Notes: a model not told the origin generated them from the letters alone. 64,000 nucleotides of DNA from Podarcis filfolensis (GCA_964270895.1 OZ185443.1), one strand, 5' to 3'. Counted from the stretch's first letter, positions 11,781 to 45,242 are shown. A program made the numbers and translations.

Positions 11781-11850
11781 CAGTGTTTCTCAAACTTGGG
11801 TCTCCGGCCGTTGTTGGACTGCAACTCCCATTATCCCTGACCACTGGTCC
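11781..11850 (+). mobile_element. Truncated hAT-type palindromic MITE
   Basis: CAGTGTTTCTCAAACTTGGGTCTCC...GTTGTTGGACTGCAACTCCCATTATCCCTG, same family as 42569-42682 and 36489-36602. Confidence 0.6.
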
Positions 11851-17875: not shown

Positions 17876-18095
17876 NNNNNNNNNNNNNNNNNNNNNNNNN
17901 NNNNNNNNNNNNNNNNNNNNNNNNNNNNNNNNNNNNNNNNNNNNNNNNNNNNNNNNNNNNNNNNNNNNNNNNNNNNNNNNNNNNNNNNNNNNNNNNNNNN
18001 NNNNNNNNNNNNNNNNNNNNNNNNNNNNNNNNNNNNNNNNNNNNNNNNNNNNNNNNNNNNNNNNNNNNNNNNNNNNNNNNNNNNNNNNNNNNNNN
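17876..18095. other. Assembly gap (220 N)
   Basis: Run of N characters. Confidence 0.99.
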
Positions 18096-28068: not shown

Positions 28069-28195
28069 CACAGTTGGAAGGGACCACAAGGGTTATCTAG
28101 TCCAGCCCCCCTGTAGTGTAGGAATCTTTTGCCCAACAAGGGACTTGAACCCACAGCCCTGAGATTCAGAGTCTCACGCTCTACCCACTGAGCTA
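28069..28195 (-). mobile_element. tRNA-Lys(CTT)-derived SINE with CR1-like tail, copy 1
   Basis: Reverse complement reads TAGCTCAGTGGGTAGAGCGTGAGACTCTGAATCTCAGGGCTGTGGGTTCAAGTCCC..GTTGGGC (tRNA-Lys-like), then AAAAGATTCC...GGACTAGAT...GGTCCCTTCCAACT (CR1 tail). Confidence 0.75.
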
Positions 28196-29184
28196 GGTGG
28201 ACAAATTGTGTGACCTAGAATAAGACAGCTTCCTTTTTTTCTTTCTTATTTAGAACAAGTGGATGTGGCACAAGGAAGGGAACTGTAGTCATCCATGTTT
28301 TTCTATCAGATTTTTCTTTTAGATATATTTTTTGTTGGATTTTGTATCTGCAGTCAGTTGAGCGTAACACTTTTCCGCGATTGCATTAAGCTGATGCAAG
28401 ACCAGTTTCCAGTCGTATTTTCTGTAGGGAAATTTTATTTTGCTCTTCATCAGTGTTTTGCAAATATTCCACTTGTGATTATTAATACTACCTGTATCTC
28501 GGAATGAATTGTCCTAATCATTAATGAACCGAGTCAAAGAAATGGACCCGATACCATTAAATTGGATGGTTCTGTATAGCACCTGGTTCATGTTGACTGC
28601 AGAAATTGGATAGCCAATTTGTTTGTTTTTTGTAACAGAGAAAAATACATCGAAATGCCACTAGTATAGGTGGGTGCCTCCCTTCCCTTTGGTTTGCTGC
28701 TGCTAGACCACATCGTGATGGAATGTCATTGTGAGCTTGCTGATAGATGCAGGAGAAGATTAATGTTCCTTCTGTCAACTAGGTAAAAGAAGAATCTGGT
28801 CCCTAAACACTAAATATTGTGAATCATCTGGGCTGTTTACAGAGATGTCTGGAATTTGGCAGTAAATTTTAGCTGTGTGCTACCTTGTGAATGCAGAAGC
28901 TTTAAGAGCAGTGTTCCAGGTTATATTTGTGCCTAGTGGGCTAGCGTGAATTTCAGCTTGCACATTTAAAAGTACAAAGCAAACAAAATCTTACATTTAA
29001 ATTACTTAAATAAAAAGAGAAATAGGCTCATATAACGAAAAAAATTCAATTTAAATGTTGAATGACAATACACAAAGAGGAATGAAAGCACTGTCCTATC
29101 ATAAATTGCTCCCCAAGTATGTGGGGTTTCCTATAATCAAGCAGCATACTGTATAAATTTTATGAAATAAATAAGCATGAGCCT

Positions 29185-36488: not shown

Positions 36489-36602
36489 CAGCTTTTCTCA
36501 ACCTGGCATTGTACAGATGTTTTGGACTAGAGTTGTGTTGGCTGAGATTGATGGATGTTGTAGTCCAAAACTTCCTGGAGAGCACCAGGTTTGGGAAGGT
36601 TG
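36489..36602. mobile_element. Short hAT-type palindromic MITE
   Basis: CAGCTTTTCTCAACCTGG...CCAGGTTTGGGAAGGTTG, internal TTTTGGACTA / TAGTCCAAAA, flanks CCATTGAT / GCATAGAT (6/8). Confidence 0.6.
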
Positions 36603-40487: not shown

Positions 40488-42045
40488 TGGTCTACACTCC
40501 CTCCACCCAAACTCAGGTGTAAATATGTGTAAACAAACCACTGCAGTCGCTGCCATGCCTCATTCCAAAGGAGCACAAACCCTGGTGGAGTGCAAAGACC
40601 CCGGAATCTTGTTCCGACTCGACAGACGGGGTGACCTGTAATACTATTATTCCTTTCCAATTACATGGCAAAGGTAGGACAACAAAAAACAATGAAGGAG
40701 AAACAATTGTGTTAACTGAAGGGAATGAAATAGGTAATTCATAGATACATTGTACATCTAGAGTCTTACTGGGCATATATTTGAGTTAAACTACAGTTAT
40801 AAACACATTTGCAGTGAAACAGAGCTCCACTTCTGTGGAGCTTCTGTGTTGCAGCTTTGCGTTCCTAGAGCTGTGCAACTTCTCCACTGAAATAAGTGAG
40901 GAAGCTGGAAAGTGTCTTACGCATTGCAAATTATCTGGGGCAGTAGAAATTCAAGTGCTGTGTTGTGTTTAGACATCAACAATGTGCCTTATTTCCAAAT
41001 GTTAAAGAGCAACAGGTTAAGGTGCCATCTTGTTTTGCTGATGTCACCACCATCTATATTTAGTCCTGAAGAGCAAACTGGATTTATAGGGTGGAAGGCT
41101 TTGGGGGAAGATACATTGCCCTACAGGTTGTTGTTGTTGCTGCTGCCTTGAAACCACAAGTGGACAGATGGACACGCACCTGGGAAAGCTGAATCCAAAT
41201 TGCACCTCTGGCATTGACTTACTGGCAGGCACACAGAGTTGGGCCCAACACCGGGGGGCTATCGTGCGTGCATGGCATCACACGTGCAGCGCCCCACTCC
41301 CTATCGGGCCATGCCTGCCAGGATGCACGGACACCTTCCGAGACACTCAGGTGATCGTGGCATGGGGTGCGGAGGGTGAAAATTGCTCTCCAAGCCTTCT
41401 GCCTGGTGTGCTGGTGTTTGCCCAGGGGCAGCAGGGGATGGGAGTTCCCTCAATACTGGGTGGGGTCTCAACACTCTGCCTCGAAATATTGAGAGGGCTG
41501 AAGCCCATTCTGCCCTCTATAGCTGGTTCCCTTGCTTAATGAGCATCATTCTTCTCCCACTGTGGTTGTGGGATGAATGAAACAAGGATGCTAAAGCCCG
41601 TAGCACATTAAAAATGCTATATGAGTGATGATTTTTTTTAAAAGCCCTCTTAATCAGAAGAATTAGGAAGTGATTGTCAAGTTGATATACATAAGGATGC
41701 TCAAGTGGTCCAGTCAGAGGGCCTGATGAAAGTACTTCATCAGGTGTTTGGTTTTGCCCATCATCCTCTTGTTTGACTTCAGGTTGTTCTACCCTAGGTG
41801 CTTGTAGCAGGAGAAACCCTGAGTGAGGACAAGAAATGCTGTGTGATTACAGGTTCTTCTGTGGTGCTTTAAACCTCATAACAAACTTGTTCAGTGAGGT
41901 CAGAGAATCAACATACTTCAGTTTCAACTAGCATTGCTTTAAAATGAGTCGTTTATAGTAGTGCTTTCTGATGGTCGCGGTGAATTGTGGTAGAGAAGTC
42001 GTTGAATTTTGTGCTTCGCTCCTGAGCCGAATGGAACGAGTCGCC

Positions 42046-42360
42046 GTGTCTCACACAATTTTGCTTGTTCAACTACCAAACGACCAGAAGGCAGGACTTA
42101 GGCTGATTATGAGTCTGTCAATGAATGCATGGAAGGTGCCTGTAAAATATATGAAGAGCACCTGAAGAGAATGAATCCTAACAAGCCTTCAATTATTACA
42201 TATATTAGCCAGTAATTTGATTTCATTGATGACTTGGCTCACCTCAGCTGCCTTGTTTATTGTGCTGATACTCAGACATACCAGGCATACAATAAAGACT
42301 GGATAAAGGAAAATATCTTATGTCCCTCTCCATAGGCAAGCTCAGCAAGCAAGCAAATAA
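42046..42360 (+). pseudogene. ERH: ERH retrocopy coding remnant, disabled
   Basis: Frame-corrected translation (V)[101 protein letters not shown] versus [107 protein letters not shown]. Lesions: ATG>GTG, 1-nt deletion near 42072, TAG 42099, TAA 42213, 1-nt insertion near 42318. Confidence 0.96.
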
Positions 42361-42568
42361 GACACCATGGTTTAAGGGGGTTTTGAGGGAAGGTGTGTAC
42401 AGCGTTCTGTAGTGAAAGTTGTTGTATTGTAGTCTTCCTGTTCATTCTTGTTAGTCTGTATTTGAGACAAAATCTGTTAGAATTCCAAGGGGCTTTCTCA
42501 GTTTAAAACTCAAAGAAGTAAGGATATGTCTTCTGCTGGTATTTTAGTTTAATTGTCTTTGCTTAGAC

Positions 42569-42682
42569 CTTTCGCAACCTGTGGGTCCCCAGATGTTGTT
42601 GGACTACAACTCCCATCACCCCTAGCTAGCAAGGCCAGAGCTCAGGGATGATGGGAGTTGTAGTCCAACAACATCTGGGGAC
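42569..42682. mobile_element. hAT-type palindromic MITE inserted in the ERH retrocopy 3'UTR
   Basis: Internal palindrome GGTCCCCAGATGTTGTTGGACTACAACTCCCATCA / TGATGGGAGTTGTAGTCCAACAACATCTGGGGACC; CTTAGAC repeated on both sides (42562-42568 and 42683-42689). Confidence 0.8.
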
Positions 42683-45242
42683 CTTAGACAGTTCTACTTT
42701 CGTTCCTCATTCACGGTATTCACTTCTGCTTTACCACAGTCGCTGTATGTACCCCTCTCTGGGTTTCCCCCCAGTGTTATTTCTTGGAGGCAATGAAGAA
42801 TAAAATAAATACTCTTTAGATAAAAAAAAGTGAAAATGATTAGTTTATTTGTAGATATGAAGTTTTATTTCACACACACACACTCAGGAGGATTGCATTA
42901 GGTTGATGCTTGAATACTTTCCCAAAAGTCCAGATTGCTACAGTGAACAGTAGCTTGGATAAGTGATCTCTTGAAAACAGTGAGTGCAGTAGGTGTGGAC
43001 ACAGGAAGGTCAGCGTTAAGTGCCCTGATGACAGTCCACTTTTAAACATCAGGGTTTTCTTTTTAAATGTAAAGCTTAAGTGCTTTGCTTTCTGTTCTAC
43101 AGTTAAATAACGTTTTGAAAATATGCATATATTGCTTCCTGCACTGCATACAAGGAAAGACTGAGACAAATAAAAAATCATATTCAGAAGTCCTCATTTG
43201 GCGACAAAAATGTAGTGATATACCTGTGTGCTGTTAAACATCATAATAAAATTATGGATGCATAATATCCACAGCTTTGAACAATAGAGAAGGTTTGTCA
43301 AAGATTGCATTCAAATAAATGCCAGGTTCTGTTTCTGGCACCTGCAATTAAAGGATTCTGGATCATGGGCATAGAAGGGCCCCTTTCCTGGAACCCTGGA
43401 GAGATGCTGATATACCAAAGTAGTCCTTCTCCAACTTGGTGCCCTTTTGGATTACCACTCCTGTCAGCAAAGTTGTAGTCTAAGGGCAGCCTATGTGGTG
43501 CCTTCCAGAAGTTGTTGAACTACTACTGGCCTATGTTCAGGTAATGGGAATTACAGTCTAGCAATAACTGGAGGACAGCAGACTGGGAATCCCTGGTGTA
43601 CATAGTACTTGGGCATAGCTGGACCAGTAGTTTGACATAAGGCTGCATATCAGTATATCCTAATCATCAGATGATGGGCAAGGTTCCATCAACACAACAC
43701 TTTCGAAGGTGGAAATATGACTCTGTTGTGCTTATTAACAAGTTACTCCATTTTGCACTGGTTCCCTGCCTGTCCCTGTTCACCCACATTCTGACTTTTG
43801 GTGTCACTTACACAGCTGGAACTGCATTATTGAAAAGGGGTTGGTTTTTATCAGACGTTTTATTAAATACAAGTTGACTCCCCCTCCCAATTGCTTTGTA
43901 AGGGAGCCAAGCAAAATAGCAACTGAATTTTACTTCAATGCTGGCAATAGGGCAGCGTCCTCCATCACACTGAATGACGGCAGGCTCATTTAAATGGCTT
44001 AGGGCAGGCCATGTGGCACACACGGTTCTGTCCTCTGAACACCTCACCCCTACTCCCTACTGCCAGCATTTCCTGTCTGAAGCAGCTGCCTCACTCTGCC
44101 TAATGGCAGGGCTGGCGCTGGCATCTAAACCATCACGACTGTGAGCAGCAAGGACCTTAATTGTAACAAAGCTTCTCATTTGCTTCTCCACAACTGTTGA
44201 TTCTCTCTCATGCTTTGTAGAGATGTCCTGCTACGTTTTGCTGGTAGTCACTGCCTTGCTTAATAGCATGCTGTTTACATGACCATAGAAGAATGAAACC
44301 CTTTCCTCCAATCTGAGGTTACTACTGCGGTGCTTTGCTTCACTAGCTCGTCATTATGGGGCCTTGGGGGCTCTCTTGCATTCACGAATGTGCCTCTTAT
44401 GGGAAATCCTCTTTCATTCCTAAGTTAAGATATCATTGGATCCTTCTCTTCTTATTTTCATTAATTGAATTAGAAACTCCTCCCTCTTCTGGTACTTGTC
44501 TATGACACTCCAAGCCATCTGTCTCAGGATAAGATTTTGGAGCAGCTCCTAAGCTTTAGTATACATCTCCCTGGAAATCTTTAGGTGGTATTTCCATCGT
44601 CTTGTCCTGTGTCTCGCTTCCCATTATTCTATATATTCCTCCCTCTTGAGAAGATGCTGAAAATGAACCAAGAACGATCCAGACATTAGGAAATATGGAA
44701 AATGGCTTACATTGCCTTAGCTCAAGTTCTTAGCTGGTTCTGACATGTTTATTGTTACATGAGCAGGGCTTAGAGTGGGATCTGCCAACTTGGTTAGGTT
44801 ACTCTAATCCCAGGGTAGAGTCTGCCATGCACTGAAAAGTTAGCATATAAAAATGCGAACTAAAGATGTTGTACCACTTTAAATGTGTAATTTTCCCTTG
44901 GACTAGCCTAGATATTTTAGGTAGCAAGTGCTGTCAGCACTGTCCCTAAGAGCTAGGTCTTCAGTTTGGCCCTGCATTGGTAACAGAGTGTGGGCCTGAG
45001 TGCAGACTTCCTGGGGAAAAGAATGCACTTAATTCTATTATTACAGTGCTGGATGGTAGTTGCCTCATTTCATCTCTTCCTTACCTATTTAAAGGAAGCT
45101 GCCGTTGGTGCTGCTTCATTGGAGAAATGGTCCTATGGTGGCATAAGAGCACTGTATTAGAGACTTTGTTGGGTGAAGATGGGATTAAGTGGGAGCAAGC
45201 TGTAGAAATGAGTTTAAGGGTCTCAAGAAGGCAAGTGGGTGA

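Follow-up and report, generated by a model that had tools for sequence, protein, structure and literature searches.

A processed pseudogene, old, broken and reverse-transcribed from the mRNA of ERH (enhancer of rudimentary), lies at positions 41941-42848 of a 64,000-nt stretch of Podarcis filfolensis DNA (GCA_964270895.1 OZ185443.1), the whole of which is referred to here as the window. Its parts are as follows, with positions counted from the first letter of the window.

41941..41956, plus strand: target-site duplication, 5' copy (AAAATGAGTCGTTTAT), preceded by TTT; direct-repeat match
41957..42010, plus strand: GT-rich segment of 54 nt that separates the duplication from the ERH homology; also at the orthologous locus in two other species
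42011..42045, plus strand: part of the 5'UTR that matches the present ERH mRNA, with four CpG kept; 29-34 reads; differences at 42020 and 42032
42046..42360, plus strand: ERH coding sequence, disabled and intronless, 315 nt (104 codons and a stop)
42361..42568, plus strand: first part of the 3'UTR; RNA depth 53-80; 14 nt present in the parent are missing behind 42390
42569..42682, no strand assigned: hairpin repeat insertion, 114 nt, with CTTAGAC as a direct repeat on either side (42562-68 and 42683-89)
42683..42821, plus strand: second part of the 3'UTR, with AATAAA at 42799 and 42804; RNA reads and signal positions
42822..42832, plus strand: poly(A) tail remnant, A8 (42822-42829) and then GTG
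42833..42848, plus strand: target-site duplication, 3' copy (AAAATGATTAGTTTAT); direct-repeat match

No Pfam domain was found in the ten longest ORFs of the window, and an Rfam scan over the window yielded nothing but one tRNA, a tRNA-Gln(CTG) on the minus strand (28129-28203; 56.9 bits with Rfam, with which ARAGORN agreed). This tRNA may be a gene or the head of a SINE. A run of 220 N, either a gap or a mask, occupies 17876-18095. At 41400-41533, the depth of DNA contigs was 3 to 7 times that of single-copy sequence in all three DNA runs, which points to another repeat upstream of the retrocopy.

An intronless and disabled ERH coding sequence

The initial annotation had reported the full 104-aa ERH frame without introns at this locus, and such a frame was indeed present, spanning 315 nt. 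Translation in reading frame 1 yielded VSHTILLVQ (42046-42072). A different frame (42075-42332) yielded TKRPEGRT-stop-ADYES...ISQ-stop-FDFIDD...CPSP, ending in KENILCPSP. From 42322 onwards the last twelve codons, stop included, return to the first frame and close with the TAA at 42358-42360. The pieces, split at the stops and 37-39 aa each (ERH has 104 aa), were searched separately. Two stop-free pieces matched Pfam PF01133 "ER" (Enhancer of rudimentary) with E values of 1.8e-11 and 9e-11 (profile positions 19-54 and 57-91), and both matched human ERH chains in the PDB (1w9g/2nml and others) with E values of 6e-17 and 1e-15 (residues 20-56 and 58-92).

All five defects that had been described previously were found: a GTG in place of the ATG start codon (42046), two premature stops (TAG at 42099-42101 and TAA at 42213-42215) and two frameshifts, a loss of 1 nt in a Pro codon (42073-74) and a gain of 1 nt at 42318. 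In addition, the copy has IITY in place of the ITYD of ERH, a 3-nt gain combined with a 3-nt loss, as a result of which the coding length still amounts to 315 nt. The single ORF over the copy (64 aa, 41971-42165) contains no part of ERH other than SHTILLVQ, so the earlier remark that the ORF track is nearly blind to the copy was accurate.

Expression and intron content of the ERH parent

Four runs from three species, three of DNA and one of RNA, were aligned to 41400-43400 at 80% likeness. The RNA run (X23) is stranded, and the organism sampled, E, is related to the source species. Outside the hairpin repeat, X23 reads were in sense orientation only, extended from 42011 to ~42810 with none on the flanks, and were collinear with the copy, without joints. 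The RNA reads were mapped to diagnostic letters, as the initial annotation had proposed, and all were parental at 42046 (A in 34/34 reads, giving ATG), 42101 (T in 22/22, giving TAT) and 42214 (T in 56/56, giving TTA). The extra base at 42318 was missing from 74 of 94 reads. Among the listed letters, 17 codons differed between copy and RNA (ten with and seven without a change of amino acid), and in all ten cases of an amino-acid difference the RNA letter restored the residue of human ERH. Since the RNA letters are all parental and restore the human residues, an intact ERH mRNA is expressed, and the protein-changing changes are all on the side of the copy. No X23 read carried the copy's own letters at the listed diagnostic places; the copy was thus not detectably transcribed in that sample.

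An intron-bearing parent, separate from the copy, was apparent from genomic contigs. In DNA of the source species (X1, record 4), 117 nt of ERH (42140-42256) were embedded in a contig of 779 nt between 239 and 423 nt of dissimilar sequence, and in X5 (record 21) the ERH match started at 42262, after 1306 dissimilar nt. In these two records the dissimilar sequence represents the introns beside ERH exons, so they derive from a parent with introns, as the initial annotation had anticipated. The local alignments end a few bases before the likely junctions near 42134/35 and 42260/61 because of mismatches at 42137, 42139 and 42260.

ERH-like contigs other than orthologues of the copy differed from it by 6-12%. 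Three of them, of ~800 nt each (X1 record 2, X12 record 10 and X5 record 18), had the whole coding part unbroken and differed from the RNA at 42327 and 42332, as did one further contig type. These genomes therefore contain no fewer than two ERH retrocopies besides the present one. Among these further intronless loci, represented by contigs over 42011-42420, one reached only 0.4-0.6 of the depth of single-copy sequence in each of the three DNA runs and could be hemizygous or sex-linked.

The 5' end of the copy

Similarity to the RNA, and likewise to all other ERH-like contigs, starts at 42011. The preceding 54 nt (41957-42010) were covered by records 9 and 17, from the orthologous locus of two other species; no match was found in ERH RNA or in other ERH contigs from the three DNA runs and the RNA run, and no X23 read fell on bin 41936-42002 in either orientation, where DNA depth was single-copy. 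An Rfam scan of 41900-42060, up to E = 10, returned only two chance matches, and local alignments of the segment, run on either strand against the remainder of the insert and against the full window, were no better than those of shuffles. The previous statement that the 5'UTR is present therefore holds for 42011-42045, which match ERH mRNA, and fails for 41957-42010, which do not. RNA depth stayed level as far as 42011 (42020, 29 reads; 42046, 34 reads), with no pile of read starts listed, which suggests that the modern ERH mRNA probably continues upstream of 42011 with dissimilar sequence. The 54 nt may represent an old or alternative 5' exon, junction filler or the product of a template switch, or a later rearrangement.

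Two candidate origins of the segment were rejected: a twin-priming inversion, as there were no reads of opposite orientation on 41957-42010 and a 14/19 inverted match was at chance level, and a small-RNA 5' partner of the kind seen in U6-type chimeric retrocopies, as the 54 nt contain no recognizable Rfam family.

The 5' end is also rich in CpG. Nine CpG were counted in the 97 nt of 41950-42046 versus six in the other ~850 nt, and the window-wide ratio of observed to expected CpG was 0.21. Of the seven CpG implied by the parental RNA letters in 42011-42045, six were kept until the sampled species split.

Target site, polyadenylation signal and tail

The AATAAA, the A-tail, the 16-bp duplication with 14 identical positions and the location of its 5' copy behind TTT/AAAA, all part of the initial annotation, were recovered at the places given there. 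The direct repeat (41941-41956 and 42833-42848) is 16 nt long and identical at 14/16 positions. Upstream matches of at least 14/16 within 1.5 kb turned up in 2 out of 2000 dinucleotide shuffles (P ~0.001), and 8 out of 1601 real 16-mers taken from the window had one as well (~0.005). The duplication starts within TTT/AAAATG (41938-41946), and the motif TTAAAA occurs at 0.1% of window positions. The contiguous TT/AAAA is the signature of L1, unlike the split Tn-TA of Bov-B (PMC13295347), and a T run ~10 nt upstream of the cut, as in the latter, was absent at the target site. The repeat may be longer by GTAG with an indel of 1 nt, in which case the insert would start between 41957 and 41962.

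At the 3' end, two overlapping AATAAA (42799 and 42804) lie 13-18 nt ahead of A8, and the depth of the parental RNA drops to zero at this end. The claim that the copy preserves the ends of the ancestral transcript was thus borne out for the 3' end; it was not for the 5' end, where 41957-42010 match no ERH RNA or DNA.

A hairpin repeat nested in the 3'UTR

The 3'UTR, previously noted as present, consists of two parts that match ERH mRNA and are split by 114 nt of foreign repeat, so that the description needs amending in that respect. In the first part, 49 of 74 X23 reads carried the 14 extra letters behind 42390. The arms of the repeat (42584-42623 and 42644-42683) are complementary at 39/40 positions. 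Parent-like contigs matched up to 42564-42568 and then again from 42683, and records 11 and 13 of organism E overlap by exactly 30 nt, the overlap that adjacent 31-mer unitigs should show without the repeat. We infer from this break and overlap that the hairpin repeat entered the 3'UTR part after retroposition.

The hairpin repeat is very abundant. It has ACTACAACTCCCA on both arms, which is also found in the window at 11816-11833 and 36549-36566, and in three lizard DNA runs its summed contig depth exceeded that of single-copy sequence by a factor of ~4-9 x 10^4. RNA reads covered it in both orientations.

Distribution among species and age of the insertion

The stretch was present in twenty public runs from five organisms. 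The contigs of organism A, the likely source, showed 0 differences, and orthologous contigs in organisms C and E differed by 1-2%; all had the same insertion and flanks and also the 54-nt segment. The two stops were common to the orthologues of the three species, as was the extra base. Organism C retains A at 42046, from which it follows that the start codon was lost later than the stops and the extra base were gained. An empty site with a single 16-mer was found in none of the three species compared, all of which have the insertion; a similar share of its words occurs in two more organisms.

Parent-like contigs diverged from the copy by ~6-9%, and the orthologues of the three species by 1.4-1.7%. 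Taken together, these values suggest that the insertion took place about 5-10 times as long ago as the sampled species diverged, and the two mismatches in the 16-nt duplication agree with the 6-9% divergence and with that age.

DISCUSSION

We consider it highly probable (roughly 0.87) that the element arose when ERH mRNA was retroposed by L1-type enzymes through target-primed reverse transcription, leaving a dead copy that later received a hairpin insertion. In this mechanism, a mature, spliced and polyadenylated ERH mRNA would have been reverse-transcribed at a nicked TTT/AAAA by an L1-type endonuclease and reverse transcriptase, giving a copy that lacks introns, ends in the poly(A) remnant and is bounded by a target-site duplication of 16 nt. 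The copy, without function, would have gained its two stops and two frameshifts before the three sampled species split, would have lost its ATG later in part of the species only, and would have been entered by the hairpin repeat in its 3'UTR part. Of the earlier designation of an L1-made mRNA copy, the derivation from mRNA, the lack of introns and the L1-type signature were all observed, and L1 as the maker is what we infer from that signature. Retrocopy numbers in non-mammalian chordates track the copy number of L1 (PMC3136929). Three features fit less well with this account: the 54 unmatched nt that adjoin the 5' repeat copy, which would not be expected of a simple full-length copy, the short A run with GTG between A8 and the 3' repeat, and the nine CpG kept at 41950-42046 in an apparently old, dead copy.

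The 54 nt could be read in other ways. If the true 5' junction lay at 42011, a copy truncated within its 5'UTR would abut 54 nt of ordinary target DNA, and the 14/16 repeat would have arisen by chance. Such a junction would explain why ERH homology all starts at 42011 and why the 54 nt resemble nothing in ERH, but a 14/16 match within 1.5 kb was obtained in only 0.1-0.5% of trials, the repeat begins exactly at TTT/AAAA and within 60 nt of the homology start, and no alternative repeat flanks 42011; we regard this junction as distinctly unlikely. A chimeric retrocopy, in which a template switch in the ERH 5'UTR or filler DNA captured in repair added the 54 nt ahead of second-strand joining, is a possibility that we entertain with some doubt. 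The modern mRNA does seem to extend upstream of 42011 with dissimilar sequence (flat depth, 29-34 reads), and the segment ends in TTTTG; on the other hand, it matches no Rfam family, no source was found for it among the three DNA runs and the RNA run, and an old or alternative 5' exon accounts for the same facts. More speculative, and in our view rather improbable, is the combined proposal that the 54 nt represent either a first exon of lizard ERH, since lost or used alternatively, or the outcome of template switching or filler capture by a reptilian L1, and that the end of the copy with the unusually well-preserved CpG cluster escaped methylation in the germ line, for instance by acting as a weak promoter.

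Alternatives that concern the copy as a whole fare worse. Bov-B/RTE and CR1/L2 LINE clades are abundant in squamates (PMC13295347, PMC11303007), which might favour Bov-B/RTE, CR1/L2 or an LTR element as the source of the reverse transcriptase; however, the tail is an A run after AATAAA and not (CAA)n or another microsatellite, and the target is a contiguous TTT/AAAA rather than a TA with a T run ~10 nt upstream (PMC13295347). Duplication at the level of DNA is ruled out by the loss of all introns, and together these origins are given very little credence. The CpG kept at the 5' end and a total length that is still 315 nt might be taken for signs of a working retrogene or a regulatory RNA. Against this stand the two stops and two frameshifts common to three species, the ten of 17 listed codon differences that change the protein, all ten on the side of the copy, and the lack of any X23 read with the copy's letters or on its flanks, and we consider a function of this kind extremely improbable. 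Retroposition of ERH mRNA by L1-type enzymes remains our preferred account.

Processed pseudogenes of ERH exist in human, and processed pseudogenes in general number in the thousands in mammals. In the mammalian L1-mediated processed pseudogenes of Esnault et al. (2000), as cited in PMC3136929, the same features recur: a highly expressed housekeeping mRNA copied without introns, together with a poly(A) signal, A tail, 16-nt duplication, TT/AAAA and disabling mutations. Compared with that system as it is cited there, the present copy derives from lizard ERH in a lacertid host, has 54 unmatched 5' nt and carries a later hairpin repeat. In Anolis carolinensis, 404 retrocopies have been reported, of which 187 are retropseudogenes (PMC3136929). 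These represent the same class in a squamate genome and were attributed to L1 by correlation; species and locus differ here, and the analysis of the ERH copy looked directly at its junctions and at the parental RNA.

The ERH copy is real but ordinary, a processed pseudogene of a type known by hundreds in lizards (PMC3136929), and it raises no new question. For lacertid lizards it provides one well-documented case in which a host mRNA was retroposed in L1 style, and for which the parental RNA, the introns of the parent and the junctions were all checked. The insertion is a neutral marker common to several wall-lizard species, and the hairpin repeat nested in it gives the relative order of events.
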